Of a stretch of 64,000 nt of DNA, positions 3 to 43,441 are shown piece after piece (within the stretch, counting starts at the first letter, position 1; every line of letters starts with the position of its first letter). Both the position numbers and the translations under genes were made by a program. Below the pieces are notes generated by a model that ran no database searches, was not told where the DNA came from, and saw only the letters and a program-made list of their open reading frames with translations. The DNA comes from Botryllus schlosseri (lineage: Eukaryota). The stretch lies in assembly GCA_051294905.1 (NCBI GenBank), contig CM119378.1, positions 9,424,001 to 9,488,000 of the forward strand. The letters are read 5' to 3'.

Positions 3-953
3 ACCAGTTTTCTCATGCAGGTCTTTATTTTCGCCAGAGGACATTTCGCTCTGGATGTCAGTTGTAGTAGTCGCCATGCAACTATGGGCCGGATTCCTAT
101 CGTCATCCGGATAAGTGCATCCGCGAGAGTGTTCTGGACCAGTTTTCTCGTGCAGGTCCATCTTTACGCCAGCGGGGATTCCACGCTCGACGTCTTCCTT
201 AACGGTGTCAGCAGGCATTCCTGTCTCAACACCTATAGTTTCCCATGGGTTCTGTGTGACGTAAGTTGCTAATTTCAACTCGTCGCTCGCACCAGTGGTT
301 ATTTCCATCTCGGTACTCGCGCCAACGGCCATTTTCCGCTCCACGCTAAATTGGTTTGCAGCATCCATCAACCCATCGTTGGTTACAGTGTAGCTAGTAC
401 TGCTTCCAACTTCGGTTCCGTTACCTTGGTCATAATGATTCCCTTCGAGTAATGATGCTAAAGACAGCTCCTCATTTGCGTTAGACGGGGTTTTGAATTC
501 CGTAGTTACGCCTGGTAATTGTTGGACTTCCTCAATCCATTTCAGCCCTACGATATTAAGTGGGACTCCTGGTCCGGTTACAAATGGAACGGGCAGTCCA
601 CCAATATCAATCACTACAAAAGAGTCCACTTGGGACGAGCCACCTATTCCAGTTAATTCCATGTCTATTGGTTGACGTTTTTCCCAGCTTCGTGGATATT
701 TAGTTATAACGACCTTTTTCATTATCAAATTGGGGATGCTCCCCGTGTCAGCTAGGAATTTTGTACCAGTTGCTGTATCAATTAAATACAACAACTGGCC
801 TCCAAACAATTCCGTAAAGTCGGGCTGTAGGGGGTCATCCGGCATATCAAGAAATGTAAATAAGGGTAATGATGAGTTATGTACAGTTTTTGTATGTTGA
901 ATTATTAAATTGTCTGGGAGCTGATTCACCGGATCAATCAGCACCCCAAGGCG
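3..953 (-). CDS. pol: Retropepsin-type aspartic protease and start of Pol, in the -1 frame relative to gag; open to the window edge and missed by the ORF track
   Basis: Manual translation gives 317 codons without a stop: FLADTGSIPNLI (D-T-G at 749-741), flap-like LTGIGG, C-terminal NIVGLKWI. An acidic linker follows, with DLHEKTGP repeated at 45-aa spacing. Confidence 0.9.
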
Positions 954-959
954 TTTTTT
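916..959 (-). promoter_or_regulatory. -1 programmed ribosomal frameshift signal: slippery heptamer A AAA AAC (959-953), 6-nt spacer, hairpin (946-916)
   Basis: The heptamer is in the gag frame, 4 sense codons before the gag TGA, and a -1 slip lands in the protease frame. Hairpin GGG-U-GCUGAUU / AAUCAGC-U-CCC has 10 pairs, one U-U mismatch and a 9-nt loop. The same heptamer is used at MMTV and HTLV-1 gag-pro. Confidence 0.88.
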
Positions 960-3778
960 GAAAGTCGTATACCTTGATTCAGTTCCTCGTCCGTCCAATA
1001 TGAAGCATCATATTGACGCGGCCGATCATGATATTGAGGTTTCGTCCAGGCCACTTGGGTATTTCCCCCAGATGGACGTGCAGGTGGTCCATGAGGACCC
1101 CATTGATCCCTATCATGCCAGTGGGTTCTATCTCGGTTTTTTGGCCTGGTATCATAATAGGCTTCGCACAGAGCGGTCCTCTGTGTAAACGAGGGTGAAC
1201 CTTGAGCAGCCAGATATCGATCAAGTCCTTCAATTGTTAGTATGTTATTTCTCGCAAGGAACGGTTTCCAGTTTCGTTCTGCAGATTCTTTAACATGAGG
1301 GGGTACAGGTCGTGCTCGCCCACGAATTACCCATCCTAATTCCTCATCCCTAGCAAGAACCTTATCGTTTAGCCACAGTATGAACTTAGCCACGCAATTT
1401 CGGGATTGATGTCCCGGTGCCTTACAGTAGTAACAGACGGACAGGGATTGTCCCTGAGTGGGATTTAGATACAATCCTAGAGGAGCGAAAATATTCGGGT
1501 TTCCAAGAAAATTGTATCTCTCACCTTGACTATCCGCAATGTTGCGGGCTTCCTGGCTGCTGGACGGCGTAATTTGTGAGTTGTCTGCACCCATCCCGGA
1601 ATCTTGCGTATTCGCCACTCGCGGACTTCGGTTTGCGGTTTCCGGTCCTGGACTAGCGCGTGAAGATCTTGTTGTTCTTGTTGGCTGTCCGTTAGGTCTC
1701 GATGATGCGTTACGCCCATCCTGTTGGTGTACTGGCCTGGCCCTCGGGCCTTGTCCACGCCTACCAAATCCATTACCATTCATGATGCGGGTGGGGAATC
1801 GATTGTTGCGTGCTTTACGTTGAGGATTCCGACGTTGTAACGGTACCTGGTCTGCATTAGCAAGCTGACGCGGTGAGATCCCCCTAGGTGATCCAGGAGG
1901 TGTTGCCCCCCCAAAGTTATTCAGTGGTTGTAGGGGCGAGGGTGATTGTACCACCGGCGGTGGGGTGTCACCAGGTGGAGGAGGAGTGTTGAGCTGACTG
2001 TCCTCTCTTCCATGAGTGGGATAACTGTGCACTATTTGTCCTGCAGGTTGAACATTATAAATGTGTACTGGCGGCAATGACGGTTTTGTATCAAGGACTT
2101 CCTTTGTTTCCTGATACCTGGGGCGTGTCTCTTGTTCATCCAGGAACTCGGAGTTCCAAACAAGTTGTAGTTCCTCCGCAACGTCCCGCCAAGTTTTATC
2201 CTCTTCCCAGCCTCGCAACATCAGTCTGAGCGCTTCTGGAAGGCGTTGTCGTAAATTTCGGAAAAGACGTAATCCATCTGGATTATCCTCAATAAGACTA
2301 TCCATGTCTATTTCTAGTTGCTTCAAGGCGCTATTCAGCCGAGGTAGCGGCTCATCCTCCCAACGATAATTTCTGCGGAATTCTCCAATGATCTTTTCGT
2401 CATTTACCAAACCCTGGGGATTGGATAAGGAAAGAGATCGCATCACCGATTCCCACTCTGCTTCTCCCGAATTGGTATTAAAAAAATTTCCCAGTTGGGT
2501 AGCCTGTTTGTGTCGACCAGCAGCCCTCAATTTCTTCTGCAGTGCATTAGCCAAAATAACATCCACATCCGTATTTCCAGGACCGTGGCGTATTCTTCGC
2601 ATCGAATTCTCCATCCATTTTAGCAGTGGCATGTCACCAGGGTCCATCATTAGCTGAAGCATTTCTTTTTCTGATTGGATTTTAGCAGACACATTCAGCA
2701 ATGGGTCCGTAATACCGGAATAGCGGTGCGGCTGTTGTCGCCCTGACCTTTGGTTACGATCGTTAGGAGTAGAGGTAAAACGAGGCATATTTGGATAAGT
2801 TAGTTTGTTAGGTTGGCCCTCATTCGTATCTTCATCCGACAAATCTTCGGAACTTCGTGGCGACTTCCAAATTTCCCTTATTTCTCGAGCCAATACTCGC
2901 ATACGATCATCGTAATCGTCGTCTTTGGTGTCTTCCGCATCTTCTGTAGCATCACTCTGTTCTCTGAAGTTCACCCGTCGGGATTCGCCATCCGCACTTC
3001 CAGCTCGTCTTCGAGAATCCTTCTCCTTGTTACGACGTTCCTGCCATCCTCGATACCCCATATACTTATCTAAGGGGCTCTTTTTTGGTTTTGTCTCTAT
3101 TTGAGGCTCCCCATTTCTGAGGTCAATCAAGAAGGGATTAGTAGGTGTATATTTCTTTTGTTTGGCGCGTGCACCACTACCCACATGGAAACAAGGCGCC
3201 GTTCCCCTGTCGGTATCTGACAACGCGGTCGAGCCGGAAAGTGGTAGCTTAGGATAGACAGCCGTTACAGTATGACAATCCAAACCTTTGCGAACCGTCA
3301 TGGTTGGCCCTGGTGTTACGTCCCGTATTCGCTGCTCAGAGAGAGGAACGTAAGCTGGTGGGTCATCTTCCGGTGCATTTGGAGATACTGTCAAAACGGG
3401 AGATTGAATGCTATCTCGTGTAGCCTGTGCATGTGACTTTCCGAGCTCAAATTCTGAAGTAAGGATGTCATTCAGCGCGTCGGTGGAGACCTTCCCGCTG
3501 ACTTTTGTTGTGGCATCACAAACAGCTTTGAGGTCTGCTTGAGCTTTTCGAACCTCTTTCTTTGCCTTTTCTAACCCTTTCATGGTTTCCGGCAGAGCTG
3601 TCTTTACCTCTTTCAATAGCTCTGTTTGTTCAGCCACGTCCTTAGCCAGTTGTCTTTCTTGTCGCCGGACATCTTCATGGCGTTTTTGTGTAGCTTTAAG
3701 CAAGGTAATCCCTTGTTTGAGTTCGTCTGTTGCTTCTGACGGCTTTTTCCTTTTGAATGCTTTCAACATCCTTCGCAT
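938..3778 (-). CDS. gag: Gag polyprotein, 946 aa
   Basis: Basic N-terminus and coiled coil; PPAY (3350-3361) and YPKL (3245-3256) motifs; helical capsid-like region (LRQRLPEALRLML...TWRDVAEELQLVW); Pro/Arg-rich linker; CX2CX4HX4C knuckle CYYCKAPGHQSRNC (1394-1435). Lies downstream of a PBS and upstream of a protease. Confidence 0.92.
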   Translation of the reverse strand: MRRMLKAFKRKKPSEATDELKQGITLLKATQKRHEDVRRQERQLAKDVAEQTELLKEVKTALPETMKGLEKAKKEVRKAQADLKAVCDATTKVSGKVSTDALNDILTSEFELGKSHAQATRDSIQSPVLTVSPNAPEDDPPAYVPLSEQRIRDVTPGPTMTVRKGLDCHTVTAVYPKLPLSGSTALSDTDRGTAPCFHVGSGARAKQKKYTPTNPFLIDLRNGEPQIETKPKKSPLDKYMGYRGWQERRNKEKDSRRRAGSADGESRRVNFREQSDATEDAEDTKDDDYDDRMRVLAREIREIWKSPRSSEDLSDEDTNEGQPNKLTYPNMPRFTSTPNDRNQRSGRQQPHRYSGITDPLLNVSAKIQSEKEMLQLMMDPGDMPLLKWMENSMRRIRHGPGNTDVDVILANALQKKLRAAGRHKQATQLGNFFNTNSGEAEWESVMRSLSLSNPQGLVNDEKIIGEFRRNYRWEDEPLPRLNSALKQLEIDMDSLIEDNPDGLRLFRNLRQRLPEALRLMLRGWEEDKTWRDVAEELQLVWNSEFLDEQETRPRYQETKEVLDTKPSLPPVHIYNVQPAGQIVHSYPTHGREDSQLNTPPPPGDTPPPVVQSPSPLQPLNNFGGATPPGSPRGISPRQLANADQVPLQRRNPQRKARNNRFPTRIMNGNGFGRRGQGPRARPVHQQDGRNASSRPNGQPTRTTRSSRASPGPETANRSPRVANTQDSGMGADNSQITPSSSQEARNIADSQGERYNFLGNPNIFAPLGLYLNPTQGQSLSVCYYCKAPGHQSRNCVAKFILWLNDKVLARDEELGWVIRGRARPVPPHVKESAERNWKPFLARNNILTIEGLDRYLAAQGSPSFTQRTALCEAYYDTRPKNRDRTHWHDRDQWGPHGPPARPSGGNTQVAWTKPQYHDRPRQYDASYWTDEELNQGIRLSKNALGC

Positions 3779-3786
3779 CGTCCTTC

Positions 3787-4056
3787 CTATTGACTGGAGA
3801 AGGTACTGTTGACAGAAGTTATTAGATCAGGTGAAGATATGTTAAAATGGATTGTAGATCCTTGCGGCGTAATCGTGGGAGGAACGTAAGCAGTAGATGC
3901 GCTGCTGTTGGATCCCAAAAATACGTTCAATAGATTAGAAAGCGCTCCAGGCGATACGTGCAGATAGATTGCTGCCAATATAATCAGGAGAGATATAGAA
4001 GATGAAAGCAAGGATACGACAAGTACAAGTTTTACGATGGTCGTCTTAGAAAGCAT
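3787..4056 (-). CDS. 89-aa upstream ORF between PBS and gag; predicted signal-anchored glycopeptide
   Basis: ATG start, ~25-aa hydrophobic N-terminal stretch, three N-X-S/T sequons (NSS, NIS, NST). It is the first AUG after the SL copy and stops 8 nt before the gag ATG. Confidence 0.65.
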   Translation of the reverse strand: MLSKTTIVKLVLVVSLLSSSISLLIILAAIYLHVSPGALSNLLNVFLGSNSSASTAYVPPTITPQGSTIHFNISSPDLITSVNSTFSSQ

Positions 4057-4086: not shown

Positions 4087-4104
4087 TCCCCGTACTGGCC
4101 ACCA
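4087..4104 (-). promoter_or_regulatory. Primer-binding site complementary to the 3' end of tRNA-Ile(AAU)
   Basis: Minus strand reads TGGTGGCCAGTACGGGGA(T). This is complementary to ...ATCCCCGTACTGGCCA+CCA of metazoan cytoplasmic tRNA-Ile as I recall it, and includes the non-templated CCA. Located 30 nt upstream of the first ORF. Confidence 0.9.
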
Positions 4105-4354
4105 ATTTTGTTTTTATAGTGCAGCTCCACAACGATTGTTATGCGAGTAGTCCACACTTGTTCGGGTTACTTCCTAGTAAAGCGTTGCCTTTCGTTTGCT
4201 TTAGTATCCTGACGACGTCTGTAAATGGTGATTGGAGCAACAACAGTTGTAGGATTGTTTCTTCTCAAGTTGACAATGACCCTGGGGTCCAGAATTTTAA
4301 TCTACCTTTATCTACTGATAATCTATAAGCTTTAATACAACCAAATACTCCAAT
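4105..4354 (-). other. Putative R/U5 part of the 5' LTR
   Basis: 250 nt between the SL copy and the PBS, with no AUG, two ATTAAA hexamers, and an end of ...AAAACAAAAT abutting the PBS. Boundaries cannot be confirmed without the second LTR. Confidence 0.5.
4330..4354 (-). other. Genome-encoded copy of the stolidobranch ascidian spliced leader
   Basis: ATTGGAGTATTTGGTTGTATTAAAG versus the 24-nt Halocynthia-type SL ATTGGAGTATTTGGTTGTATTAAG (recalled from memory), differing by one inserted A. Not followed by a GT donor. Confidence 0.8.
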
Positions 4355-4365
4355 CAGTTAATTGC

Positions 4366-4427: not shown

Positions 4428-5244
4428 CAATTATAACACAAGGCATGGTTTAACCTATACATCATCATACACAATTAACAAACATTTTCAATACTCCAAG
4501 GTTTGTTTTCGCATATAATTGATGCGACGGCCTTTCCTGCCGTAAATATCAATACATTTCAAATATCAATTCCTATTCATCATAATATTCTTCAGTATAC
4601 TTGCGATTATAATGTTTCAATCAATTATAACATATCAACATTAAGGACGTCATGTCTTCAGTGCAATTAAAATCACTATGATCCTCTTAATCGGACCGCA
4701 TGATACTACCCTTAACTAAGATGCCACTTAATACAGGCATTGCAGATTGTTCAAACAGGTTTTAGTGTTCATTATTTAGTTAATTTAATGGTTTAGTTGT
4801 TCAAGATTTTATAAGATTTTATATTGTTTTTCATTAATTATTTATTTAGCCTATAATAAGGGTTCGCACCGTAAACTTCGGATTTTGTTTCCCTAAAACT
4901 AGGGCTTCAATCCCTAGGGTCCTGCTTAAAAATAAGGGCGTAGCAGTGTATAACGCCTTATATACATACTGTAGGGATGACGAGGCCCCACAGTATTAAA
5001 TTCATTCGCAGTTAGCAAAACAGCAATAATCCGTACAAACTGTAAAACATTTCTGAATATAGGTTGACCAAACCATTCAATAAACCGTGAACGTGACGGA
5101 ATCAATTTTCTGTGCAACAAAATACAATAAAATGACTCTATGCAAGACGCAATAGAGATTCTTGACCATTCTATATTCCGTAGGTCAGTTATAACACTTT
5201 ATATACATACATGAAAACAATAGCATTCCTGGGCTTAATATTTC

Positions 5245-5694
5245 TCATTGAACTAAGACATCTATAGTATCCTCAGGATAAAAGGGTTCCGTAGATTCGG
5301 CTTGTTCCTTCACCCATTCATCCGTGATCAAATTTTCCATAGGATGCATTCGAGCCATATAGTTGAACCACAAAAGTTTAGCCTTTTCATAATTTCCAGA
5401 GGCCATGTCTCTTATCATTTTATGGTTTTCTAGTATTCCTTGGTAGTCAATAACAAGGGGCTTCTCATCAGAAAGAGTTTCTTTAATTCGTTTGAAAAAA
5501 CATTTCAATCCAAGTTTGATATATTTGGGCGGGGTCCTTGACCATTCGTACCATCTATGAGAGGGGGGCATTCTTGCTTCATATCGTTCTTTGAATAACC
5601 AAAAATAAAAGATCAAATCTTGTTCCGCCACATTAGATCCAACTAGTTTGGTGACATCAACATCACCTTTATCATTTACTTCAGCGTTATTCAT
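5245..5694 (-). CDS. Accessory protein, family A (149 aa), unknown function
   Basis: Intact ATG ORF; motif H..I......NYEKAKLLW....RMHP.....DEW shared with three neighbours; closest to 7652-8047. Confidence 0.8.
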   Translation of the reverse strand: MNNAEVNDKGDVDVTKLVGSNVAEQDLIFYFWLFKERYEARMPPSHRWYEWSRTPPKYIKLGLKCFFKRIKETLSDEKPLVIDYQGILENHKMIRDMASGNYEKAKLLWFNYMARMHPMENLITDEWVKEQAESTEPFYPEDTIDVLVQ

Positions 5695-5749
5695 ACTTTT
5701 AATTTTTCTGAAAGCAATTAATCATCCAGTTAAGGTTCTATTTGGTCAT

Positions 5750-5810
5750 GCAGACGGAAATGGGGTAACTCAATGTAAAACTCAATTAAATTGGCATACA
5801 CGTCATACAT
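5750..5810 (-). promoter_or_regulatory. Promoter-like block, copy 2 (upstream of a family A gene)
   Basis: Aligns with 4366-4427; contains CGGAAAT and a CRE-like TGACGT. Confidence 0.55.
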
Positions 5811-5860
5811 GATTAATAGACATTCAACCTAGCAAAAAATACAATATACAATCCAGGCAT

Positions 5861-6316
5861 TCATTGTTCATAATCACATCCATTATATTTCATTTTATGT
5901 ATCAGTATAGCAGCTCTAACATCAGAGGGAAAAGTATCATTAAAGAGTTTATCATTGGTATAAATACAAAATCCGTTTCTATCAGAACAAGGCATTCTTT
6001 CTAGTACCCATTCTTCAGGTACAACATCCGAAGCAGGATGTAATCCAACACAGAAGACAAACCAACAAAACTTTGCATGTTCGTAATTTTCAAACAGTAT
6101 CATGCGGGCGATGGCTAAATGCTTTTTGTATAGCGCATCAAACAGTTTGTCGGATACTCTCAGGTTGCAAATCCTCAAGTAAGGTGTCATAAATATCTCC
6201 AGTTCATCCCGTGTGGTTGCAGCCCATCTGCTGAAGTCTTTGTGTTCATATTTCTTCTCAAAGGAATCGAAGAAAACGTCAAGTTCATGCTTTACTCTAG
6301 CAATTTTATCACCCAT
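5861..6316 (-). CDS. Accessory protein, family A (151 aa)
   Basis: HLAIARMILFENYEHAKFCW...LHPASDVVPEEW; closest to 8053-8508. Confidence 0.8.
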   Translation of the reverse strand: MGDKIARVKHELDVFFDSFEKKYEHKDFSRWAATTRDELEIFMTPYLRICNLRVSDKLFDALYKKHLAIARMILFENYEHAKFCWFVFCVGLHPASDVVPEEWVLERMPCSDRNGFCIYTNDKLFNDTFPSDVRAAILIHKMKYNGCDYEQ

Positions 6317-6452
6317 ATTTTCTTAATATAGAGAATTTTACGTTGATTATTGGACCGGAAACTTTTCTTACTGACATTTTTAACACATATAAGTATAACA
6401 ACACTTCCAAAATATTCAATAATTGTGATGAGCATACTGGATGCATAGTAAT

Positions 6453-6908
6453 TTACTTAGCATACATATCAGTCCAGTTTCTTGCCGTTCTTTGATAGCA
6501 ATCATAGTCATCCCTATACAGTCTAGCGCTCTCAACATCCATTGGATCTTCTGGATTAGGGGAAGCCAATAATGACGAAATCGAGACCAATACTTTTCCC
6601 AACGTTAAAGCGGGTGACCATTCATTTGCAAGAATGTCAATACATATGGTACCCTTACGGCTTATATTCGGATGGAAAATCTTGGTTTCAAATTTGATCT
6701 TCGGAGGCTTGAATGGATATTCCGTTGGAAATTCAATTCTAAGAAGAAATGTTCCTTTTTCATATGGTGTTTTTGGTGGTCCTCGCAAAAGTGCTTGCCA
6801 AACATAGATATCCGACTCGTCCAATGGCCCTGCTTGCAAAATTACAGGATTTGTTCGTATTTCTTGATTAATTTTTCGCCGTTCAACGTATAATCTATGT
6901 TTTGCCAT
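6453..6908 (-). CDS. Ubiquitin-conjugating enzyme E2 (UBC4/UBE2D-like), intronless
   Basis: FPTEYPFKPP, HPN motif, and catalytic Cys in FHPNISRKGTICIDIL...WSPAL. The ATG is at 6908; the ORF track start at 6932 is a TTG. Confidence 0.95.
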   Translation of the reverse strand: MAKHRLYVERRKINQEIRTNPVILQAGPLDESDIYVWQALLRGPPKTPYEKGTFLLRIEFPTEYPFKPPKIKFETKIFHPNISRKGTICIDILANEWSPALTLGKVLVSISSLLASPNPEDPMDVESARLYRDDYDCYQRTARNWTDMYAK

Positions 6909-6968
6909 TCGATGCAGACTTATACTATCCAATAAAACTTACACACATAAAAGAAAAGGGGAACATCA

Positions 6969-7493
6969 CTAATTCAATCGTTTATCCATAGCGTACATGT
7001 CACGTGAAAATCCGGCAATAGTTCTGCTAGTAATGTTCCAATCTTCATCAACATTAGCTATAGCCAATACATATCGTAGAAATAAGTACAAATAGTACGC
7101 AGGACTTTCTCCAAAGTTTTCTTCCACAATGCGCTCCAGTACTTTTTTTGCGCATTCCAATTGTTCCGCCACCTCATGGTCCCGGTATAACCAGACAAGA
7201 AAATCTTTCAATACATACTCCATGTCATTGGCTGTCAACTTCGGAAAGTTTTCTATTCTTTCTTTTATTCGTTCATGTACAACTCCCATCTTTAGCCAAG
7301 CAACTCTGCTGTCAGGTATCGTAGGGTATAGACACTGTCTGAACTTGTTCCGATTCAATTCCTTCTTCTGGGGATCTTTAGGCACATACTCATACTTTTC
7401 ATGATTAACTTCCAACATGTCACAATCAAAGATCAAATAAATTATTAGTGTCTTAAAATTCCTTACACAAAAAACCCAAACATTATTAAACAT
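6969..7493 (-). CDS. Accessory protein (174 aa), unknown
   Basis: Intact ATG ORF inside the array with an SL-like relic 9 nt upstream; no recognised domain. Confidence 0.7.
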   Translation of the reverse strand: MFNNVWVFCVRNFKTLIIYLIFDCDMLEVNHEKYEYVPKDPQKKELNRNKFRQCLYPTIPDSRVAWLKMGVVHERIKERIENFPKLTANDMEYVLKDFLVWLYRDHEVAEQLECAKKVLERIVEENFGESPAYYLYLFLRYVLAIANVDEDWNITSRTIAGFSRDMYAMDKRLN

Positions 7494-7651
7494 TCAACGA
7501 ATCTTAATCAGCAAACCAACTTAATTACACACATAAAAGTTTTTAATTCTAGTTGTTATATTAGATATAGTACATGGTTTTTGAAATCACAAAGTTCTTT
7601 ATATCCAATTGATATAGTGGAAAATTTGATGCATTATATGTATCATTTCAG

Positions 7652-8047
7652 TTAATCATCTTTCAAACATCCTTTTATCCATTGTTCTGAAAAGTTCTCC
7701 TTCATGGGATGCATACGAACAATATGTTGGTACCAAAGAAATTTGGCTTCCTTATAGTTTCCCAGTGTAATAATTGCAATCCTATTATGTTCTTTGATAG
7801 CAGCATGATAACCCAGAGCCTTGCCTTGCGGAGATAATGCACTCCCGTAAACTTTGTCAACATACAGCTTCAGCATTCCAACAATGTCATTGGGTCTTGT
7901 CATAGCCCATCTTTGCCATCTGTCGGAAATTTCCACATCTTCTTCATAATATTTACAGAACATGTCAAAATAATATTTCAAGTCGCACACTGCAGATTCA
8001 TATCCCATTCGCAATGATTCCTGGTTACTTCTATTTCTTTGAGACAT
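7652..8047 (-). CDS. Accessory protein, family A (131 aa)
   Basis: HNRIAIITLGNYKEAKFLW...RMHPMKENFSEQW. Confidence 0.8.
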   Translation of the reverse strand: MSQRNRSNQESLRMGYESAVCDLKYYFDMFCKYYEEDVEISDRWQRWAMTRPNDIVGMLKLYVDKVYGSALSPQGKALGYHAAIKEHNRIAIITLGNYKEAKFLWYQHIVRMHPMKENFSEQWIKGCLKDD

Positions 8048-8052
8048 TCTTC

Positions 8053-8508
8053 TTAATCGTGTAATATAACAATTTTCGAACAGGCGTCTTCTAAAATCGG
8101 AATAGCAACAGTTTCAAATTCTCGAGCATTCAGAAGTAATGTTGCAGAATCTTTTAATTCCATTTGTGGTAATCTTTCATCCAGAAATTCTTCTGGTAGA
8201 TACTTATGAGCCGGATGTAATTTTAGAACAAGTCCAAACCATGTATATTGGGCCAGATCAAAATCTTTTGTAACAAAAACGCGAGCAATATCACTATGTG
8301 CGTCATAAAGCTTATCAAAAAGCTTTTCTGTCACATTCGCAAAACAATGATGAAGGTATTTCTTTATTAATTTTTTGAATTTTTCCTTTGGGGTATTTTT
8401 CCATATCTCAAAATTTTGATGATGGTATTCCTGTTCAAACTCATCATAGTATTCATTAATTTGTTTCTTGGCTAGCGTAATTTCCCAATTCTCTAATACT
8501 CTAGTCAT
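8053..8508 (-). CDS. Accessory protein, family A (151 aa)
   Basis: HSDIARVFVTKDFDLAQYTW...LHPAHKYLPEEF; an SL-like relic directly abuts the ATG. Confidence 0.8.
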   Translation of the reverse strand: MTRVLENWEITLAKKQINEYYDEFEQEYHHQNFEIWKNTPKEKFKKLIKKYLHHCFANVTEKLFDKLYDAHSDIARVFVTKDFDLAQYTWFGLVLKLHPAHKYLPEEFLDERLPQMELKDSATLLLNAREFETVAIPILEDACSKIVILHD

Positions 8509-8637
8509 CTTAATACAGAATAAAATACTTTAAAATCATATGTTCAATTTTACGCGCAAAAGTAACTAGTAACGTTATGCATTATACATATGCATCAAGA
8601 GCATTCATGCCACAAAATAATAGTCCTGCCTGCTCCA

Positions 8638-10329
8638 TCAAGCTCTATACACCTTTATCTTTTCCAGTATTGTTTCACCACAAATGTTGCATCTTTCGGT
8701 ATTTGTTGCACATTTTTCACAACTACATAAATGTCCACAAGGTATGAAAGTAATTTCACTTTTGTTTCTCTTGCAATTTTTGCAAAGCACAACCTCTTGT
8801 ATTTCTTTCAAACTTTGCGCGATCTCATCCACCGACATTGTTTCTGCAACTGCTGCTTCTTTCGTTTCTTTGTTGTTGTTTACTTCGTGATTATTTTCAG
8901 ATATACTATCGCCTTGTTGTGTTGTTTTCGTTGGACTGGCGGTAATTGTATTTACTGTCTCTAGTAAATCCTGAATTATATCACCAGTAGAGAAAGGATC
9001 ATTAATCTGTCTATTTATAGTTCCTTCTATTTGATCTCTCGTAAATCCCATGTCTTCCAGTTGCATCCTGTTTATGTATTGTCTAGATAACCTTGGTCGA
9101 TTATGGTTCCTTCGTATCTCCTCTCGTGGTGCATCAAGACATATTGCATTCCTTATCGATGGTCGATTGAGATTGGGATGTTCATCTCTTAGTCGTAAAA
9201 CGAAATCAATACCTTTCATTTGCAAAACATATTCACAACCAGGAAACCACTTTGCATGTTCTGTCCACGGCTCATCATTGTAGTTCCAGTTTTGTAATCC
9301 TCCATTGCAGTAAAAGCATTTCGCCCTGTCCGAATCCCCTAAATAATACATACCCGCTTTAGCCAATTGTTCCGTTGTTGCGAGGATCCTGGGCCATTTT
9401 TCATTAAACGAAGATATTCTTTGCTGTAACGATGTCATATGCAAATTTATCGGGTAAAGGCAAGGGAATCTTTCCACCAACTGGAGTTGTTCTTCTGGCG
9501 ATGGATCCGGAGGTTCTCCCCTATTAGTAGTTAACCTTTCAATTTTTATTTTAAGTTCATTATCTGCCTGATTTCTCTCGGAGTCTGTCAAGGGCATATT
9601 TCCTGCATACTCGTTATTTGCCATTTTGCATTTTGTAAAATGTCTTTTATGTTGTTCAAGGACATTATCAGTGGGTGCCCAATTTCTCAGTACTCCTGAG
9701 CATGAAAAACATTGCGCTCTGTCAAGGTTTCCCAGGTAAAAAAATCCCTGTTTTGCCAATTCCCCTACCAAGTATGGAGTAGGATAGGAAGGCCATTTGT
9801 CAAAGGTTCTTCTTCTCTCTAGTTCACTCCTCAAATTTGCTGATCGCAATGAAGTCTCATGTTCTTGGTCACAAATGTTCGCAAACACGGTTTGTGGTAA
9901 GGGACATTTTTCCTCTTTGATAGTCGGTCTTTGCACATTCCGATTAGTTTGCTGACTTCTTGTAGTAAGGTTAAGGTGGCACCTCATTTGTTCAAAAAGG
10001 AGCCTCCTTAAGTAATTTGAAATAGGCAAGTTATAACCATGTTGTATGGTCACCATGTCACAAGTAGATTTATGCCACTTGTCATCAAAAGGATCATCTC
10101 CAGTGACCCATTTTTCCACAGATACGCCACAGCAGTAACATCTTACTCTATCTTGAAATCCTGTCCAATAGAAACCAGCAGCGGCTAGATAGCTCGGTAT
10201 CACAGGAGTTTCTTTCGAAAAATGTTTGAACGTTGCAAGTCTGTAATACTCAACCCGGTGATCTCCAGGTGGAATATAAACGCAATTATGTCCAGGAGGA
10301 TCACGATCTCTTTTCATCAGAATGCCCAT
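8638..10329 (-). CDS. iap: Inhibitor of apoptosis protein (3 BIR, UBA-like segment, RING), 563 aa, intronless
   Basis: Three BIR repeats (LAAAGFY...C..C...W...D...H...C pattern), LEDMGF UBA-like segment, C-terminal RING CKNC...PCGHLCSCEKC...CNIC ending IKVYRA. Confidence 0.96.
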   Translation of the reverse strand: MGILMKRDRDPPGHNCVYIPPGDHRVEYYRLATFKHFSKETPVIPSYLAAAGFYWTGFQDRVRCYCCGVSVEKWVTGDDPFDDKWHKSTCDMVTIQHGYNLPISNYLRRLLFEQMRCHLNLTTRSQQTNRNVQRPTIKEEKCPLPQTVFANICDQEHETSLRSANLRSELERRRTFDKWPSYPTPYLVGELAKQGFFYLGNLDRAQCFSCSGVLRNWAPTDNVLEQHKRHFTKCKMANNEYAGNMPLTDSERNQADNELKIKIERLTTNRGEPPDPSPEEQLQLVERFPCLYPINLHMTSLQQRISSFNEKWPRILATTEQLAKAGMYYLGDSDRAKCFYCNGGLQNWNYNDEPWTEHAKWFPGCEYVLQMKGIDFVLRLRDEHPNLNRPSIRNAICLDAPREEIRRNHNRPRLSRQYINRMQLEDMGFTRDQIEGTINRQINDPFSTGDIIQDLLETVNTITASPTKTTQQGDSISENNHEVNNNKETKEAAVAETMSVDEIAQSLKEIQEVVLCKNCKRNKSEITFIPCGHLCSCEKCATNTERCNICGETILEKIKVYRA

Positions 10330-10569
10330 AGTTTCAATTCGGTCATTTCTCGGTGTAATTGCTTTCGATGGAACAGGCGTTCAATAATACAGATCAAAAT
10401 GTCTAAATATAACCATACCAATCCAACATTCTAGTAATAATACATAAACATTCTGTTAAAAAAAAATATCATTATATAAGATTTCTCGAGGTTCCAAATT
10501 AGCATTGGTTCGATAAATTCCATGGATTGGGTGTAAAGTCATTATTTAATTGTCAATATGTGACAACAG

Positions 10570-11229
10570 TTAATGGAGATGTATGTCCAAAATATAGGAA
10601 TTTTCCAGATATTGATTCATTGACTGGGCTTTCTTATCTACTTTCTTCGAGTATATGTATATATATGCATCCATAACGGAGGTATCAGAACTCAACGACA
10701 TATAACCTTTTACTCCTAGGTTGGTTTGGCTGTGCCAAGTCCATTTGCAATTCGCATCTGTAACATAAGCCAGACTATTTGCACATACTAACAATCTTGT
10801 ATGGCCCATTATTACTCCTCGTATCACTTCATATATTACTCGTCTCATACATAGGGGAGGTATTCTTCGGACAACTCCCATCAAAGTTTCCGTAATTATA
10901 GTCCATGTGTCGTCATCGGGTCGTATTGTCTGTTTACTCCATACTATGAGTCGTTGTCGTGAGGAATCTTTCACAATGGCAGAATCCTGGGAGTCGTCAG
11001 AGTCCGTATTACTAGAAATTTCGTCCTCCGGCGTTTCTCCATGGGGTTTCCTGTCGCCACATGGAAGTTGTCTTTTGTACCAATTATGTTCTTGTTCAAA
11101 AAAGTTTTTCAACATATCCATCAGCAACTTTAGACATCCAGTATTTTTTCGCACGTCGATTTTATCTAGTTGATTTATTAATTTACAAAAAATAGCAGTA
11201 TTATGATCCTGTACTTCAGATAGATACAT
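10570..11229 (-). CDS. Accessory protein, family B (219 aa)
   Basis: YEVIRGVIM...WHSQTNLGVKGYMS shared with 14247-14813. Confidence 0.8.
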   Translation of the reverse strand: MYLSEVQDHNTAIFCKLINQLDKIDVRKNTGCLKLLMDMLKNFFEQEHNWYKRQLPCGDRKPHGETPEDEISSNTDSDDSQDSAIVKDSSRQRLIVWSKQTIRPDDDTWTIITETLMGVVRRIPPLCMRRVIYEVIRGVIMGHTRLLVCANSLAYVTDANCKWTWHSQTNLGVKGYMSLSSDTSVMDAYIYIYSKKVDKKAQSMNQYLENSYILDIHLH

Positions 11230-11482
11230 TTTATCCCTGCGAATATAACAATAATGTGCAATAACAATAAAAGATCCTGATTCAAGATTTCAATGCATCA
11301 AATCTCGATATTAGATATCATATAACATACATGTAATACATTCACTCACTATGACACAACAATAATAGAAACATTTCATAGGTTTTCTAAACATGTAGAT
11401 TATCATACATGCCTCTATTGCTTCCCTAAAGATTCAAATCTCTCATCTCTAATGATATTGCACATAGTGACCAACATTGTTT

Positions 11483-12430
11483 TCAATGTTCCAGTGTCCT
11501 AAAATTAGGATCAAGAGCAATTATCTCTAAAAATAGTTGAAACCTTTCCTCCAAGGCCACCCTTCTTTTCCAGAGCCACTCCTGTAAGTAATGAGGAATA
11601 AGTGATCTTGATACCCCATTCAGCCTTCTAATAGCAGCTTTAAAAAAATTCCAAGACACCTCGATCAATTGTGTATTTATGCCTTCTGTAGTGACAAATT
11701 CGCGATCATGATTAACTACTGAATGTTTATAATTCATTCCCAGGCTTTCCAACTTGCGGTAACTGGCAAATGAATCAGTCCATATAGTGGATCCCTCTTT
11801 TACGTGTTTCATAATTATTTCTGATAATACAGAGGTTTTTCTCCCTTCTTCAGGTACCAATTCTGCAAACATTTCTCGCGTTTTCATATCTATTCCAGCC
11901 AAAACCCAGCGTTGGCGTATTATTCTTCCACGATTAAATTTTCTTTTGGCCACAAACGTCTCATCAATTTGAATTACATGTGATTTACCTTGTGATATTC
12001 CCCCTATTAGGGTACCTCTTCTTTCCATTTCCACAGAGCATATCTTACGAAGTTTCTTGGTCCAATTCACCATTGTTCTCTTGCTGACGTGTGCTTCAAA
12101 AGCTATTTGTCGTTGAGATACATCTATGGTCCAAAGATAAATCATCATTACAAGTTGGGTGAGTCTTATTTTACTTCCTTCAAATAGTGATCCTTTCCTT
12201 ATGGACGTGGTAGTCCTGCACTTTGAAACCGGACACCTCCATCTATATCCATCCATAGTTCTTTTGCATTTTTCTTCATTCATTTGTTGTCCACAATTAA
12301 AACATGTTGCCTTTTGAACAAGGAGTTGCCGTGATCGCAGAAACTTTATACATTTTCGTTCACTTGATATTATACCACATCGAGCAAGATTGAATAGATT
12401 TTTTCTTTTTCTGGATTCTTTAGTCTTCAT
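11483..12430 (-). CDS. IS1595/ISXO2-like (Merlin-type) DDE transposase, 315 aa
   Basis: N-terminal Zn ribbon (CFNC...WRCPVSKC), HTH-like region, catalytic QIDET / WTDSFASY / TQLIEVSW, C-terminal YLQEWLWKR. No TIRs seen. Confidence 0.9.
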   Translation of the reverse strand: MKTKESRKRKNLFNLARCGIISSERKCIKFLRSRQLLVQKATCFNCGQQMNEEKCKRTMDGYRWRCPVSKCRTTTSIRKGSLFEGSKIRLTQLVMMIYLWTIDVSQRQIAFEAHVSKRTMVNWTKKLRKICSVEMERRGTLIGGISQGKSHVIQIDETFVAKRKFNRGRIIRQRWVLAGIDMKTREMFAELVPEEGRKTSVLSEIIMKHVKEGSTIWTDSFASYRKLESLGMNYKHSVVNHDREFVTTEGINTQLIEVSWNFFKAAIRRLNGVSRSLIPHYLQEWLWKRRVALEERFQLFLEIIALDPNFRTLEH

Positions 12431-12499
12431 ATTTATTTAAAACTTTATTGTCTTTTCAAAAGTAGTTTTCTGTATATACAAACATTGGAAAGTTAAATT

Positions 12500-13006
12500 T
12501 CATGCAGGCACTTTCAAAGTCATAAATTGACAATCGGCTTCTTTTAATGATATTCCCTGCGTCTTTGCCCATGCGTAGATCTGAACTTCCGGAAAGATTA
12601 TCCACATTATGAGATCTCTTTCAGAATCTCCCCTTTTTATAAATTCCCTCATTTCAGGATTTACCCTTTTCAAAATTGTTACCCAGTTTATGCAAATTTC
12701 TGCAAAAGCCATTTGTATAGGTTTTTCAGGGTAAATGCTTCCTGTATAAATTTCTTCCCACTCATTTTCAACCAGATGTTTCCCAGGCCAATGATTGTTG
12801 TATGTGGTGACACCATACTTTTGTTTCCAATATAGTAGTCGTGGATTTGATTCGTCATACATTATATCACATAAGTGATCCGTCAATGTATATGTTGTTA
12901 ACAGAAACTTCAGCGACTTTAATCCATTGTCTATTAGTGTTTCTTTTTGGGGTATCCATGTCGTATGTTGTATTTCTGGATCATCACAACGTAATCCCAA
13001 ACACAT
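12500..13006 (-). CDS. Accessory protein, family C (168 aa)
   Basis: MCLGLRCD, NPRLLYWKQ and ERDLIMWIIFPEVQIYAWA are shared with 16238-17098. Confidence 0.8.
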   Translation of the reverse strand: MCLGLRCDDPEIQHTTWIPQKETLIDNGLKSLKFLLTTYTLTDHLCDIMYDESNPRLLYWKQKYGVTTYNNHWPGKHLVENEWEEIYTGSIYPEKPIQMAFAEICINWVTILKRVNPEMREFIKRGDSERDLIMWIIFPEVQIYAWAKTQGISLKEADCQFMTLKVPA

Positions 13007-13110
13007 TTTTATAATTTAAGTAAATCCTTTATACAACATATTTAAATTCAGTTACATAGTACCATATTACAATTATTACACCAATTTTCAATTTATATAC
13101 TTAATCATTT

Positions 13111-14160
13111 TTACATTAGTTTAATAATAACTAGCCAAACAATAACGGTAAATGTACACTTTGAATGTATAGTCACACGATTGGAAAGACTTTTCATTTC
13201 GTCATCATATAGTCTTGATTGTTTACGTACATAGGGTCTTCTGGTAGGTGTTTCATTATTATATCTATTTAATTTTAAAACTTCCAGATCTGGTAATTTT
13301 CTCAATAGGGAGTCATTAAGAAATTGAACATGATTATAACTAAGATCAATTGTATGCAGATATCTGAACGATATGTTGGAGGACAGAGAAAAATATTGCA
13401 AGTTATTATAGTACAACGTTAATCTCTCTAAATTACATAAAGATTCAAGTATTGTCATATCAAATTCCACCAGTTTATTTTCATCCAAGTTCAAAGTTTC
13501 CAGTTTCCTCAGTCCTTTGAACGCCCCTTCTTCTATAGCGCTTATTGCGTTTCTTGATAAGTCTAGTATTCTTAAATGACGTAAATGAATGAATGTTCCA
13601 TTCTTTAGTTTCTTTATGACATTGTTGTCCAAATATAGTCTTTTTAACTTTTCCATGCTTGCAAATTTCGATCCTTCTATTTCCGCCAGCAAATTACTGC
13701 TTAAGTACAAACTTTCCAGTTGGTGTAAGCCTGCAAAGCTTTCTTTTTCAATTCGTGTGATGTAGTTTCGCATCAAATTTATCTCCCTAAGCTTTTCATT
13801 TTTGCAGAAGACCCCTCCTGGTATGGTTTGGATTTTATTCCAACCACAATGCAACACCTCTACGTCTTTATACTTTTCCAATTGTCCTTTGGTTATTTCC
13901 CGTAGGCAGCTGTCGTTGATGAATATCTTTATTGTGTTCCGACAAGATTTTGCCAGGTATATCTTGTCAGGATCCGGAATTCTTGTATAACTCGAATGGT
14001 CACACCAAAGTACCAAATTGCTTCCTTGCATGCATTCCGGGTATAACATGGTTCGTCTTTCATCCATTGTACACTTCTTTTGTTCTATTGTTTCCGGATA
14101 AATAGCATAACACATGCCTAGCCATAATACTAGTAGTTCCACTCGGTTCATTTTACTCAT
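13111..14160 (-). CDS. Signal-peptide-bearing leucine-rich-repeat protein (349 aa) with a hydrophobic C-terminus
   Basis: Signal peptide (VELLVLWLGMCYA), Cys-rich N-cap, about 9 24-aa extracellular-type LRRs (LxxLxLxxNxL), terminal CTFTVIVWLVIIKLM; no TIR domain. Confidence 0.92.
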   Translation of the reverse strand: MSKMNRVELLVLWLGMCYAIYPETIEQKKCTMDERRTMLYPECMQGSNLVLWCDHSSYTRIPDPDKIYLAKSCRNTIKIFINDSCLREITKGQLEKYKDVEVLHCGWNKIQTIPGGVFCKNEKLREINLMRNYITRIEKESFAGLHQLESLYLSSNLLAEIEGSKFASMEKLKRLYLDNNVIKKLKNGTFIHLRHLRILDLSRNAISAIEEGAFKGLRKLETLNLDENKLVEFDMTILESLCNLERLTLYYNNLQYFSLSSNISFRYLHTIDLSYNHVQFLNDSLLRKLPDLEVLKLNRYNNETPTRRPYVRKQSRLYDDEMKSLSNRVTIHSKCTFTVIVWLVIIKLM

Positions 14161-14246
14161 GAATTAGATAACCCACTTTGTTACTCTATACCTTCGAAAA
14201 AGTGTCCTTTGTAAGTCAAAATCTTATTTACAGTCGTTGTCATTAC

Positions 14247-14813
14247 TCATGATTGTTCCGGTATTATAGAGTCAATGTTCACACTTTCCCCTTCGTAGGG
14301 GTAAGGATGTATTTCTATACGTCTTATCCTTTTTGTTCGCCAATGTATTGAACTTGAATAGCCTTTTAGGCCCAAATTATTCTGGCAATTCCATTGTTCC
14401 ATATGTGGCGGATCTTTACAAATTTCTCTCTCCTGGTACACGTCCTTTGTTATATTAGTGTTTGTAAGTTTCATCACAAGTCCTCTAATTAATTCATACA
14501 ACATGACTCTTCTTCCCAAAGAGGTGTATTCCTTTGCTCTTATTTCAAATATCTCTTCTGCCACATGGTTGAATTTATCAAGAATTTCTTCGGTTAATTC
14601 CTCATCTAGGGCTACCTCTTCTAGGCCATCGTCTGTTTGTTTAACCCAATCGGCTTGGTCCGTAAGCAATTCCCATACTTTTTCTTTAAACTGGTATCTC
14701 TCATATTCGCTGTTATATTCTTTAAGATTCAATAGATCCAACTCGTCATATACATCGTACAAATGACACCAATTTGTTGAATCGTAACCTTCAATATAAT
14801 CAAAATCTAGCAT
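14247..14813 (-). CDS. Accessory protein, family B (~188 aa)
   Basis: YELIRGLVM...WNCQNNLGLKGYSS. First in-frame ATG is at 14813; the ORF track start at 14870 is a TTG. Confidence 0.78.
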   Translation of the reverse strand: MLDFDYIEGYDSTNWCHLYDVYDELDLLNLKEYNSEYERYQFKEKVWELLTDQADWVKQTDDGLEEVALDEELTEEILDKFNHVAEEIFEIRAKEYTSLGRRVMLYELIRGLVMKLTNTNITKDVYQEREICKDPPHMEQWNCQNNLGLKGYSSSIHWRTKRIRRIEIHPYPYEGESVNIDSIIPEQS

Positions 14814-15888
14814 TCTTTTTTCAAACAAAATAGCAATTTCGCACAATTTACCGTTTTCAGGATATGACAATTCTCAAGACTCATGTTATTACTTTTACTT
14901 TTCACTCATAACTTATCAAGTATACTCCATTTATTAATTTATTAATCACCCAATACTTATTAGGCAATAAATCTCTCCCCCCCACAAGGGATTTAATTAT
15001 TTTATAATTTTCTATTTTCTGGTTTTTATTTATATAATTTTTTTTTCTCATTAAGATTTTATCTCTTATATAGCTTTTATCATTCGGTATTAGCAATAAT
15101 TTTATCATTTTTATGATCTATAAACACAATCTGACATTTTATTTTTTTGAAGATTTTTTTAGTGGGGAAAATAATACGACATATCAATTTAAACATTATT
15201 AAAAGATAATATTACTCATCATCCTTGCCTTCCCTTCCATAAGAAATGTTTTGACCCGAGTTTCTCTGAATGGCGAAACTAATTTATTCAAGGATCATTT
15301 ATACAAGTATTACACAATTACGTCTCATAGAGACTATTGTAGGAAGGGTGCCATGAGACAAGAATGTGAGCAATTTGCAATATGTTACTTTACTAAACTA
15401 TTACCTAATTAAATATTGGGTAAAAGACTAGAAGCTAAGCTAATTTTTTACGCATCTTATGTATAGTACCATAAAGAATTTACATAATCAGAAAAAATTT
15501 TAATAACAGCAATAACTCAAATAGCAGCAAATTAGTGTGAGGCTCACACAAAGAGATCTTGGCAGAGCGCAAAGCGTGGGCAAAACGGAAAAAATTACGC
15601 TCACGTCATTCTTTATAAAATATAAAATAATTCGATTAGCATAACATATAAGTATGAACACGAGGTGATTTGTGATAGGGTAGGTTGTCTGGGGCCGTTA
15701 CAGACTAAATTTTAACACAAAAATTGCAGCCGAAAATTCATATATAACATTCAATATTATAGAAAACAACACCGTACAATTCTTCATAATTTACAATAAC
15801 AAGTTCTTCTCGAATTTAAAAAAGTTTTTGCAATAAAGATAGGTCGATCTTGCATTCAAGTACTCAAGTTCTCATAGTCCCCGGGATG

Positions 15889-16155
15889 TCATTCTAGGGG
15901 AGGTGATAGCGGGAACAATCCCAGCGATTGATCAATGTATCGGAATCTTTTAGTAAAAAGGGAAACTGTATTAATAACTCTGAGTAAATATATATCGTAA
16001 AATACAGGTATATAGTTTCCACTTTTGCTAATCTCAAGTTTCACTATACCCGGCTTCTATACTTTTTCCGTTAAGTTTGACCTTTTGGTAGTGGTGCCGA
16101 ATTGATAAATTGTCCTAAACCACCACCGGTCAGCCCTAAATAATTCAGTTATCAT
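15889..16155 (-). pseudogene. Possible disrupted accessory gene (89 codons with one internal TAG at 16057-16059)
   Basis: ATAAG-ccATG start resembles the neighbours; MITELFRADRWWFRTIYQFG...EKV*KPGIVKLEISKSGNYIPVF continues in frame. Confidence 0.35.
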
Positions 16156-16237
16156 GGCTTATCTAATAGGCTATCCCTAAAAGTCCAGATCAATCAAGAT
16201 AATTTCTAGATCAAACTAATAGTAGTTTATTTTAAAA

Positions 16238-17098
16238 TCAGCCCATATTACCACTAGAGGCAGCATGTGATCCATCTACACTGGGTCTCCGTAAAACTAC
16301 CATTCGGGTCGGAGCCTCTGGTCTGTTTGGAAACCTACTGTCTCTACTGGTTGAAGATTCAATATCAAACATCAATGTAGTTTCCGAATTGGTGTTTTTG
16401 ACTAATTGTTTGTCTCCCTCTTTTTTTAACGAGCTTTTAAAGGTTGAATCCGACACTTGGTCAATCGGTAGAATAAAAACGCCTCCCAAATAACCAAACG
16501 TGCTCGTGGACCCGTATGTAAATCTCCATTGTTCTAGATTTCCCCCAAATAGGAACTCAAATTCTGCATCCATCCTACATCTCGTAAAACAAACTGTTCG
16601 CATGTTTTTTGCCCCCCGATATTGTTGTAACAGGAGAGCTATGGCGGTTATTATCGCTTCTGGATATAACACATAAAGCACGATATGTCCTTTATCTCTT
16701 TCAGTGTTTTGGTCTAGTCCTTTGTGCATACTACAAGCCTCTTTCAAATAGTCATGGCATAATGTCATGAGTTCAAAAATCTGCCCGGTATTCTTGAAAT
16801 ACGGTTTTACGTGTCTCATAAGGTAACATTGTTTACATTCACCGACCCCTACCGGGTGAAAAGGCTTTCCTATTTTTATCCAGTCCTCCTTGGTGTACAT
16901 ACTTTGTTGCCAATATTGTACCCTTGGATTGTCCCGCTCACAAGTGCCGAACAAGAGGCCCATCAAACGATCCCGAACCGGCGCAGTTTTTATAGTTTCC
17001 ATTACCATCTGCTGCCTTTGCGTAAGATCGAAATGCATTGCCCACTCGTAGACAACCTTGTGATCCGTATTAGGGTCGCACAACAGCCCGTAGCACAT
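16238..17098 (-). CDS. Accessory protein, family C (~286 aa)
   Basis: MCYGLLCD, NPRVQYWQQ, ERDKGHIVLYVLYPEAIITAIA. ATG at 17098; the ORF track start at 17110 is a TTG. Confidence 0.8.
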   Translation of the reverse strand: MCYGLLCDPNTDHKVVYEWAMHFDLTQRQQMVMETIKTAPVRDRLMGLLFGTCERDNPRVQYWQQSMYTKEDWIKIGKPFHPVGVGECKQCYLMRHVKPYFKNTGQIFELMTLCHDYLKEACSMHKGLDQNTERDKGHIVLYVLYPEAIITAIALLLQQYRGAKNMRTVCFTRCRMDAEFEFLFGGNLEQWRFTYGSTSTFGYLGGVFILPIDQVSDSTFKSSLKKEGDKQLVKNTNSETTLMFDIESSTSRDSRFPNRPEAPTRMVVLRRPSVDGSHAASSGNMG

Positions 17099-17283
17099 TT
17101 CTTTCTTCAATTAGTTCCCTATTTATAACTCTTAAATACAGAAGGTTTCCTCTTTTATTCATACAACTCTCAGTAAATTGTTTCATATTGTAAATCAATG
17201 TGAAACAGAAAATATACATTGGTTAAATTTTTAATCATACAACCTTACCAATCATGTGAGTCCAACAATATGCTAGAATTTAT

Positions 17284-17802
17284 CTAACCATCATCAGGAT
17301 ATGATGTTGTAGGTTGAATTTGAGCGGTAGGTGGCTGTTGCCGAAACATGATACTGCCAAAAGATGTATACGTCCCATCTGACATAACATTGCTATTATG
17401 CGGCAAGTCGTGGCTCGTTGAAAGTGGCGTCAGTAAGGACGTCAAGAAAGGACTACTTGTTGATGTTGAGGAGCTGGTCTCTATTTCTTCCCTTCTATTC
17501 TGTTTGTTTGAGGCAGATTTTCTTTGTGAATATGGTTTTACTTTTGCTACCTCTCGATTTTTTACGTGTTTTCTACGATAGTCATTTCGCCATGGCCACT
17601 CTTTAACTTTTTCATTACTTGCTTTCATCCCTTCGAAGAAGGACTCCGCATAATGTCTAGTTTGATTCTTAATGTCCTTGAAAAAATCATTCCATCTTTG
17701 TAATCTCTCTGTCTTTTTAACCCATCGAAGTTCCTCATACCATAGTTCGATATTCTCAATAGATAGCTCCCATAATTGTTCTTTAGTTATTGAGGCAGAC
17801 AT
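17284..17802 (-). CDS. Accessory protein (172 aa): Trp-rich helical N-half, Ser/Thr-rich disordered C-half
   Basis: Intact ATG ORF in the array; KEQLWEL...WVKKTE weakly resembles family B KEKVWELL...WVKQTD. Confidence 0.7.
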   Translation of the reverse strand: MSASITKEQLWELSIENIELWYEELRWVKKTERLQRWNDFFKDIKNQTRHYAESFFEGMKASNEKVKEWPWRNDYRRKHVKNREVAKVKPYSQRKSASNKQNRREEIETSSSTSTSSPFLTSLLTPLSTSHDLPHNSNVMSDGTYTSFGSIMFRQQPPTAQIQPTTSYPDDG

Positions 17803-18944: not shown

Positions 18945-19466
18945 TTACTCGTTATTCCAGGGGCGCCAAAACATTCTATCAAGGCGCCTGAGAGTTGCCT
19001 CGTCAAGAGGTCGTAACTGTTCATGATCTGAGGATGGATCGGAATCGCTACTACTAACACCAGAATCAGTATCGGGTAGAGTATTCAAACTTTCATTCGA
19101 ATCTGTCAAATCACTAGATTCGGAATTCGGATAAGTTCTCAACTCGTGGTCTGGGAAAAGATAGGACTCTATCCAATCATGTCCAGAATCACATCCGGAG
19201 CCAGACAAAATACTCGAACTTTCATCTGAGTCAGTGAGATCTAATTCCGAGTCCGTATCATCTCCCCAGATCGAAGGGTTTCTTTCAAAATAGCTTTCCA
19301 AAGTGGCCTCGTCAATTTCTTGTTCATTTTCCTCATTTTCATCTGCTTCAGGCGATGTTTGGCATGATTTGAGAATTTCATCTATATTTTTTAATACAAC
19401 AATCCACCTTCCAGTCCAGATTTGTTCATCCAGAACAGAGGCTTCCATGGCATCAGAACTTGTCAT
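18945..19466 (-). CDS. Acidic Ser/Asp/Glu-rich accessory protein (173 aa)
   Basis: Intact ATG ORF, same strand as the array; internal repeat ELDLTDSDES / SSDLTDSNES. Confidence 0.7.
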   Translation of the reverse strand: MTSSDAMEASVLDEQIWTGRWIVVLKNIDEILKSCQTSPEADENEENEQEIDEATLESYFERNPSIWGDDTDSELDLTDSDESSSILSGSGCDSGHDWIESYLFPDHELRTYPNSESSDLTDSNESLNTLPDTDSGVSSSDSDPSSDHEQLRPLDEATLRRLDRMFWRPWNNE

Positions 19467-31935: not shown

Positions 31936-32039
31936 AACTTATTAAAGATATTTTTTAAACATCTTCCATGAGTTCAAAAGATGTCCTTCAATGAAGTGCA
32001 AAATATATACATTTGTCGACAGAAATGGATATATATAAG

Positions 32040-43403: not shown

Positions 43404-43441
43404 AAACTAAATATAATCGCGCACTAGACCTAGACTACCGT

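Follow-up and report, generated by a model that had tools for sequence, protein, structure and literature searches.

The locus examined here raises the question of why the short RNA tag that an ascidian normally adds to its mRNAs by trans-splicing should be written into the DNA of a retrovirus-like element, at the point where the leader of the element's own messenger appears to begin. The window, that is, the whole stretch of DNA that was analysed, comprises 64,000 nucleotides of Botryllus schlosseri (GCA_051294905.1, contig CM119378.1, positions 9,424,001 to 9,488,000). An earlier note made from the sequence alone had reported an ascidian spliced leader (SL) of 25 nt at 4330–4354. This 25-mer occurs once in the window, on the minus strand, and no match is expected in shuffled sequences even when up to three mismatches are allowed. 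Together with the G at 4355, it forms a 26-nt match to the 25-nt SL listed for seven stolidobranch ascidians, including Botryllus, Halocynthia, Herdmania, Styela, Polyandrocarpa and Boltenia (PMC3795323, Table 1 and supplement), the only difference being one extra A in the 3′ A run. The 24-nt SL given in the note is therefore correct, and the observation that the host-type SL is encoded in cis at this position is confirmed.

We next examined the region downstream of the SL, reading on the minus strand, so that the element runs towards window base 1. As the note stated, no GT donor follows the SL; the next bases are CT. A PBS-like 18-mer that begins with TGG lies at 4087–4104(−) and starts 225 nt after the SL, and the gag-like ATG at 3778 is located 576 nt from base 4354. 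The 225-nt segment between the SL and the PBS-like site (4105–4329(−)) contains no ATG, and only one ATG lies between the SL and gag, compared with 8.5 ± 2.3 in dinucleotide shuffles, none of 2000 of which was as low. By contrast, the 577 nt upstream of the SL hold 21 ATGs, and no 577-nt window anywhere in the 64 kb has fewer than two. The single ATG, at 4056, opens an ORF (ORF0, 3787–4056(−)) that the note did not mention. ORF0 encodes 89 aa with a hydrophobic, transmembrane-like N-terminus, gave no Pfam match and ends 8 nt before the gag ATG. A 110-aa ORF likewise abuts gag on the contig of the closest relative, whereas the Styela clava relative described below has none. The promoter-like block that the note placed upstream of the SL found no support, as no TATA-like element sits at a consistent distance in the four related loci.

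The gag-like ORF (938–3778(−)) encodes 946 aa without stops or frameshifts and contains a CCHC zinc knuckle. The Pfam hit is marginal (20.5 bits against a cut-off of 20.8), but the four knuckle residues and the start Met are invariant in nine relatives, and the family profile hits retroviral nucleocapsid knuckles in the PDB. A pol ORF (1–1007(−)) overlaps the end of gag in the −1 frame, carries retropepsin-like D[TS]G motifs and stays open for 335 codons until it is cut by the window edge. This fragment is 48% identical over 151 aa (E 5e-43) to the N-terminus of the pol of the Styela clava relative, which carries RT and RNase H. The 3′ end of the element lies beyond window base 1, and no second copy of the 5′ region was found in the window. 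There is no tandem repeat around the SL, and a second, 10-nt SL-like word at 4490–4499(−) is within chance. An inverted partial copy of the SL (4230–4253(+), 8 + 6 nt shared) pairs with the SL in the MFE fold of the RNA. The duplex energy is −22.8 kcal/mol, compared with −14.2 ± 2.0 kcal/mol in shuffles, 0 of 500 of which were as low. Significant pairing of the SL with the downstream leader was observed in the window only, the inverted copy was not found in the relatives, and we have no explanation for it.

The surroundings of the element are also unusual. Directly upstream, at 5245–19466(−), at least 14 back-to-back intronless ORFs lie on one strand, including a UBC E2 enzyme (6453–6932), an IAP-like protein with three BIR domains and a RING (8638–10329), an IS1595-like DDE transposase (11483–12430) and an LRR protein (13111–14160). 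This is unusually gene-dense for an animal genome and may represent a giant transposon, a viral-like insert or a retrocopy cluster. Further repeats in the window, which are unrelated to the SL, comprise a 71-nt tandem array, a 12-nt microsatellite-like array and a 182-nt inverted-repeat pair that is MITE-like (39028–39609; 32013–32190; 33611–34279).

To determine whether the cis-encoded SL is peculiar to this copy, we searched for relatives of the gag-like protein. An exact look-up of the window's gag found nothing on record, whereas a HMMER search against 1.8 billion representatives found 29 related gag clusters. The closest relatives (P0001, P0002, P0004 and P0016) sit on Logan contigs with 5′ leaders of about the right length and are not among the loci compared here. 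The comparison therefore rests on the window and three 22-kb loci, denoted L001, L003 and L004, while L002, L005 and L006 gave no usable 5′ region. L001 is from Styela clava (GCA_964204865.2; ‘uncharacterized protein LOC144432391 [Styela clava]’), and its gag is 45% identical. It has the canonical 24-nt SL at 8681–8704 on the gag strand, 1296 nt before the gag ATG and followed by GT. L003 (ENA ERZ21736675; gag 27% identical) has an exact copy of the 16-nt Ciona SL (PMC7986045) at 9639–9654, 346 nt before the gag ATG and followed by GT. L004 (ENA ERZ22157276) has 15 of those 16 nt at 9643–9657, at about the same distance from gag and also followed by GT. The stolidobranch SL is absent from L003 and L004, and among the loci examined the exact Ciona SL was found only in L003. 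An exact 16-mer is expected about 1e-5 times by chance in 22.6 kb. That the hosts of L003 and L004 use the Ciona-type SL is our inference. Scans for the SL in viral contigs and JGI metagenome contigs, and a gag-based metagenome scan, gave no hits.

Although the remainder of the leaders is almost unalignable, the flanks of the SL are conserved. The window and L001 align from 8 nt before the SL (4356–4363(−) in the window) to some 12–35 nt after it, depending on the BLAST settings, and share nothing further upstream. L003 and L004 align from 13 nt before the SL to 3 nt after it, and additionally in a 15-nt PBS-like motif. In all four loci, [T/G]AACT ends 0–2 nt before the SL. The motif is TAACT in three loci, including the window, where it abuts the SL at 4356–4360, and GAACT in L001, and in L003 it is the full seven-base branch-point-like word. 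Given a background of about 1.1 TAACT per kb per strand, three exact hits in a three-position slot is of the order of 1e-7. The A of the motif lies 20–29 nt before the terminal AG of the SL (about 29 nt in the window), and the probable branch point of the Ciona troponin I gene, the one such site that we found described, lies 18 nt before its trans-splice acceptor. The bases after the SL are GTT in three loci and CTT in the window, so that TT is shared at +2/+3. The ATG counts after versus before the SL are 1 versus 21 in the window, 13 versus 37 in L001, 3 versus 10 in L003 and 0 versus 11 in L004. The upstream sequence is also more AT-rich in the window and L004, as described for Ciona outrons. 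L003 contains a second SL copy, 14/16 identical, one base after the first (none of 1000 shuffles was as good), and L004 contains a 9-nt fragment of the SL 3′ end at that place (P 0.017), whereas nothing significant was observed in the window or L001. In L004, a perfect 168-nt tandem duplication (9658–9993) begins immediately after the cis SL and ends just before gag, and as a result the PBS-like motif occurs twice. TGG-initiated PBS-like motifs are conserved in position: a 9-mer around the start of the window's site is shared with L001, and a different 15-nt motif is identical in L003 and L004 and has one mismatch in L005 at the equivalent place. This would favour tRNA priming and some terminal redundancy, although ARAGORN found no tRNA genes in these sequences with which the sites might be matched.

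The relatives also indicate what kind of element this is. The pol of L001 carries RVT_1, RT_RNaseH_2 and a Tpt1/KptA-like domain. The 1122-aa pol of L004, the one full-length pol observed, has RT, RNase H, a Tpt1-like domain and a full-length Exo_endo_phos domain that is closest to cellular ExoIII/APE1 (E down to 3e-41), but no integrase domain. Its RT is closest, among solved structures, to a caulimovirus-type polyprotein and to Ty3. An 895-aa envelope-like ORF follows in L004 and matches the alphavirus E1 (class II fusion) family. In relatives (L001 12625–15759; L004 2778–6146 and, with the envelope-like ORF, 6097–8784), a Tpt1/KptA-like RNA 2′-phosphotransferase domain and a cellular-type ExoIII/APE1-like nuclease are found where an integrase would be expected, and a literature search on Tpt1 in retrotransposons and reverse transcriptases listed no paper on such an element. 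A search with the Tpt1/nuclease part of the L004 pol returned only that locus's own second copy plus LINE-like and bacterial proteins. gag and pol stand in a −1 frame relation in the window, L001 and L004. No repeat pair resembling LTRs was seen in L001, L003 or L004, but this proves little because none of these copies is complete. L001 lacks the nuclease part of pol and the envelope gene through one truncation, and L003 is interrupted once by a transposon after gag. L004 holds two head-to-tail copies, of which one has a 5′ truncation and one internal gag deletion and the other is cut once in pol by a transposon. In L005 the sequence upstream of the PBS-like site is satellite repeat, and in L006 the gag is cut by a transposon gene. 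A further module is shared by the window (39586–44427(−)) and L001 (378–4930), in which an IS1595-like DDE transposase lies next to an ORF of about 845 aa. The two large ORFs align over about 810 aa (25% identity, E 6e-83) and look like a fusion glycoprotein, with a polybasic site, a long heptad-like region and a C-terminal hydrophobic anchor.

These results show that the SL is present in four independent loci of one gag family, on the gag strand and upstream of gag, with an SL type that differs between loci, conserved flanks, a drop in AUG density at the SL and, in L003 and L004, partial second SLs. A change between two SL types at the same place and between the same flanks cannot come from point mutation and requires capture of the SL from RNA by reverse transcription, at least once per lineage. 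We therefore suggest that element RNA carrying the trans-spliced host SL at its 5′ end was reverse-transcribed, and that the SL is kept as a fixed module ([T/G]AACT, the SL, then [G/C]TT) that marks where the mature element mRNA begins. In this view, which we consider somewhat more likely than not, transcription starts upstream in AU-rich, AUG-rich sequence, and the branch-point-like TAACT, the U-rich cis SL and its terminal AG together form a trans-splice acceptor. A fresh host SL would then replace the old one and be written back in the next round of reverse transcription, so that the cis copy would be renewed rather than slowly decaying. This would account for the flanks, the AUG boundary, the tolerated one-base indels and the lineage-specific SL type, with the stolidobranch SL in two stolidobranch-type copies and the Ciona-type SL in two distant relatives. 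Trans-splicing at this site, an upstream start, renewal and any role in strand transfer are inferred from sequence alone. The AUG boundary fits the outron ‘sanitisation’ described for Ciona, and the one-base indels in the cis SLs of two of the four loci are easier to tolerate if the cis copy is spliced away. On the other hand, tunicate SLs have no internal AG, so that the tandem partial SLs are not explained by the simple dinoflagellate scheme, and the GT after the SL in three relatives can also be read as a donor. Copying of the upstream TAACT flank in each cycle would need an LTR-like or tandem terminal redundancy, which was not seen in these incomplete copies.

The interpretation given in the earlier note, that the element has hard-wired the host SL into the R region of an LTR, either by reverse-transcribing a trans-spliced RNA or as mimicry for host translation, is only partly supported. 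Its inference of reverse transcription stands, whereas the LTR and R-region frame draws no support from the copies examined. The missing GT donor and the extra A, which creates an ATTAAA proposed to double as a poly(A) signal, are features of this copy only, as the three relatives have GT after the SL and none has the extra A. Moreover, a second ATTAAA lies about 30 nt further on without it. The note's model of transcription beginning exactly at the SL, without trans-splicing, remains possible, though we regard it as unlikely. It is consistent with the AUG boundary at the SL in all four loci, with the conserved abutting motif, which could be an initiator, with PBS-like sites 115–326 nt downstream, as expected of R-U5, and with an SL that stays nearly perfect while the rest of the leader has diverged, as expected under selection. 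However, a start of transcription at the SL is no better supported than a trans-splice acceptor at that place, and the branch-point-like motif favours the acceptor. No TATA-like element lies at a consistent distance, the change of SL type needs capture from RNA in any case, indels in two of the four cis SLs are odd for a selected mimic, no LTR or 3′ copy has been seen and pol lacks integrase in the relative where it is full length. In addition, a cis transcript would get an ordinary m7G cap, whereas SL RNAs carry a trimethylguanosine cap.

A more speculative possibility, unlikely on present evidence but not excluded, is that the cis SL is itself the terminal repeat (R) of the element. Its terminal AG would serve both as the poly(A) site of the RNA coming from upstream and as the acceptor where the host adds a fresh SL. 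The genomic RNA would then be terminally redundant for exactly the host SL, and host trans-splicing would supply one of the two repeats needed for strand transfer. If so, this would be a retrovirus-like element whose replication signal is borrowed from, and kept matched to, the trans-splicing system of its host, paired with an unusual integrase-less pol carrying Tpt1-like and APE1-like domains.

We consider it unlikely that the sequence is an SL RNA gene or pseudogene, whether captured by the element or lying next to its insertion site; membership of an SL RNA gene array, which the note had named as an outcome that would overturn its reading, is not observed. The GT after the SL in L001, L003 and L004 and the conservation of about 8–13 nt upstream, as might be expected of a gene-proximal promoter element, are compatible with it. 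However, neither the Ciona-type Sm motif (AGCUUUGG, within a 46-nt RNA; one mismatch allowed) nor a generic RAU4-6GR motif lies within 120 nt after the SL in any of the four loci, and the window copy has CT rather than GT. There is one SL in the 64 kb of the window and one in each of the three 22-kb loci rather than an array, whereas Ciona has at least 670 gene copies. The SL is intact, always on the gag strand and followed by a leader with shared islands. Rfam found nothing at gathering or permissive thresholds, and SL-RNA-like folds of the region are no better than shuffles. The idea that the window copy is an intron-less, spliced version of the L001 arrangement was rejected, because the roughly 12–35 nt after the SL align between the two loci and the window's CT aligns with the GT of L001. 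Finally, a plain processed retrocopy of a trans-spliced element mRNA, made in trans, would be the simplest way for an SL to enter DNA, has precedent in dinoflagellate retrogenes and would agree with the lack of similarity between the window and L001 beyond 8 nt upstream, but it is very unlikely given the [T/G]AACT motif conserved directly upstream in four loci across two SL types, the intact gag and visible pol, and the conserved PBS-like sites.

Comparison with known systems places these findings in context. At Ciona operon junctions, the acceptor AG is also the poly(A) site of the upstream mRNA (PMC1488885), which offers, purely by analogy, a way for one AG-terminated module to end one RNA and begin the next, and thus makes a role of the SL as a terminal repeat conceivable. 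With Ty3/gypsy-type, Metaviridae-like LTR retroelements, the family shares a gag with a CCHC knuckle, a D[TS]G protease-like region, a −1 gag/pol frame and Ty3-like RT plus RNase H, and it also has a TGG-initiated PBS-like site. It differs in the absence of an integrase domain from the L004 pol, in the Tpt1/KptA-like and ExoIII/APE1-like domains of relatives and in the E1-like envelope ORF, and no LTR pair was seen in these incomplete copies; the window's own pol is visible for only 335 codons. The SL RNA gene-specific retrotransposons, namely SLACS, CZAR and CRE in trypanosomatids and NeSL-1 in nematodes, are likewise physically tied to spliced-leader sequence, but the relationship is one of theme only. 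Those are non-LTR elements with a restriction-like endonuclease that insert inside SL exons of tandem gene arrays, whereas here the SL is whole and single-copy, without an Sm site, the RT is Ty3-like and the nuclease in relatives is ExoIII/APE1-like.

The nearest known system is the relict SL of dinoflagellate retrogenes, or ‘mRNA recycling’ (Slamovits and Keeling 2008, as described in PMC3229502; also PMC12014239 and PMC6050394), a recognised footprint of RNA-to-DNA recycling that a 2011 paper called apparently unique among eukaryotes. In full-text searches of a paper library, we found no report of an SL-bearing retroelement in tunicates. If confirmed, the present case would show a mobile element built around host SL trans-splicing, would provide in the copy-specific extra A a natural marker that separates cis-encoded from trans-added leaders in ordinary RNA-seq, and would flag a poorly known retroelement family with a Ty3-like RT, no integrase, Tpt1-like and APE1-like domains and a class II fusion-like envelope gene. 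In both systems, a DNA-encoded SL lies at the 5′ end of an RNA-derived copy, a full SL is followed by partial, more decayed copies (here significant in L003 and L004 only) and the implied cycle is transcription, trans-splicing and reverse transcription. Here, however, the footprint sits in a chordate lineage and the carrier is a retrovirus-like element with its own gag and pol rather than a host gene. The SL type differs between the two groups of copies, matching the two known tunicate SL types, and tunicate SLs lack the internal AG that explains the dinoflagellate truncations. The upstream flank is conserved, so the SL is internal to the copied unit, and the flanks are conserved enough to suggest a function.
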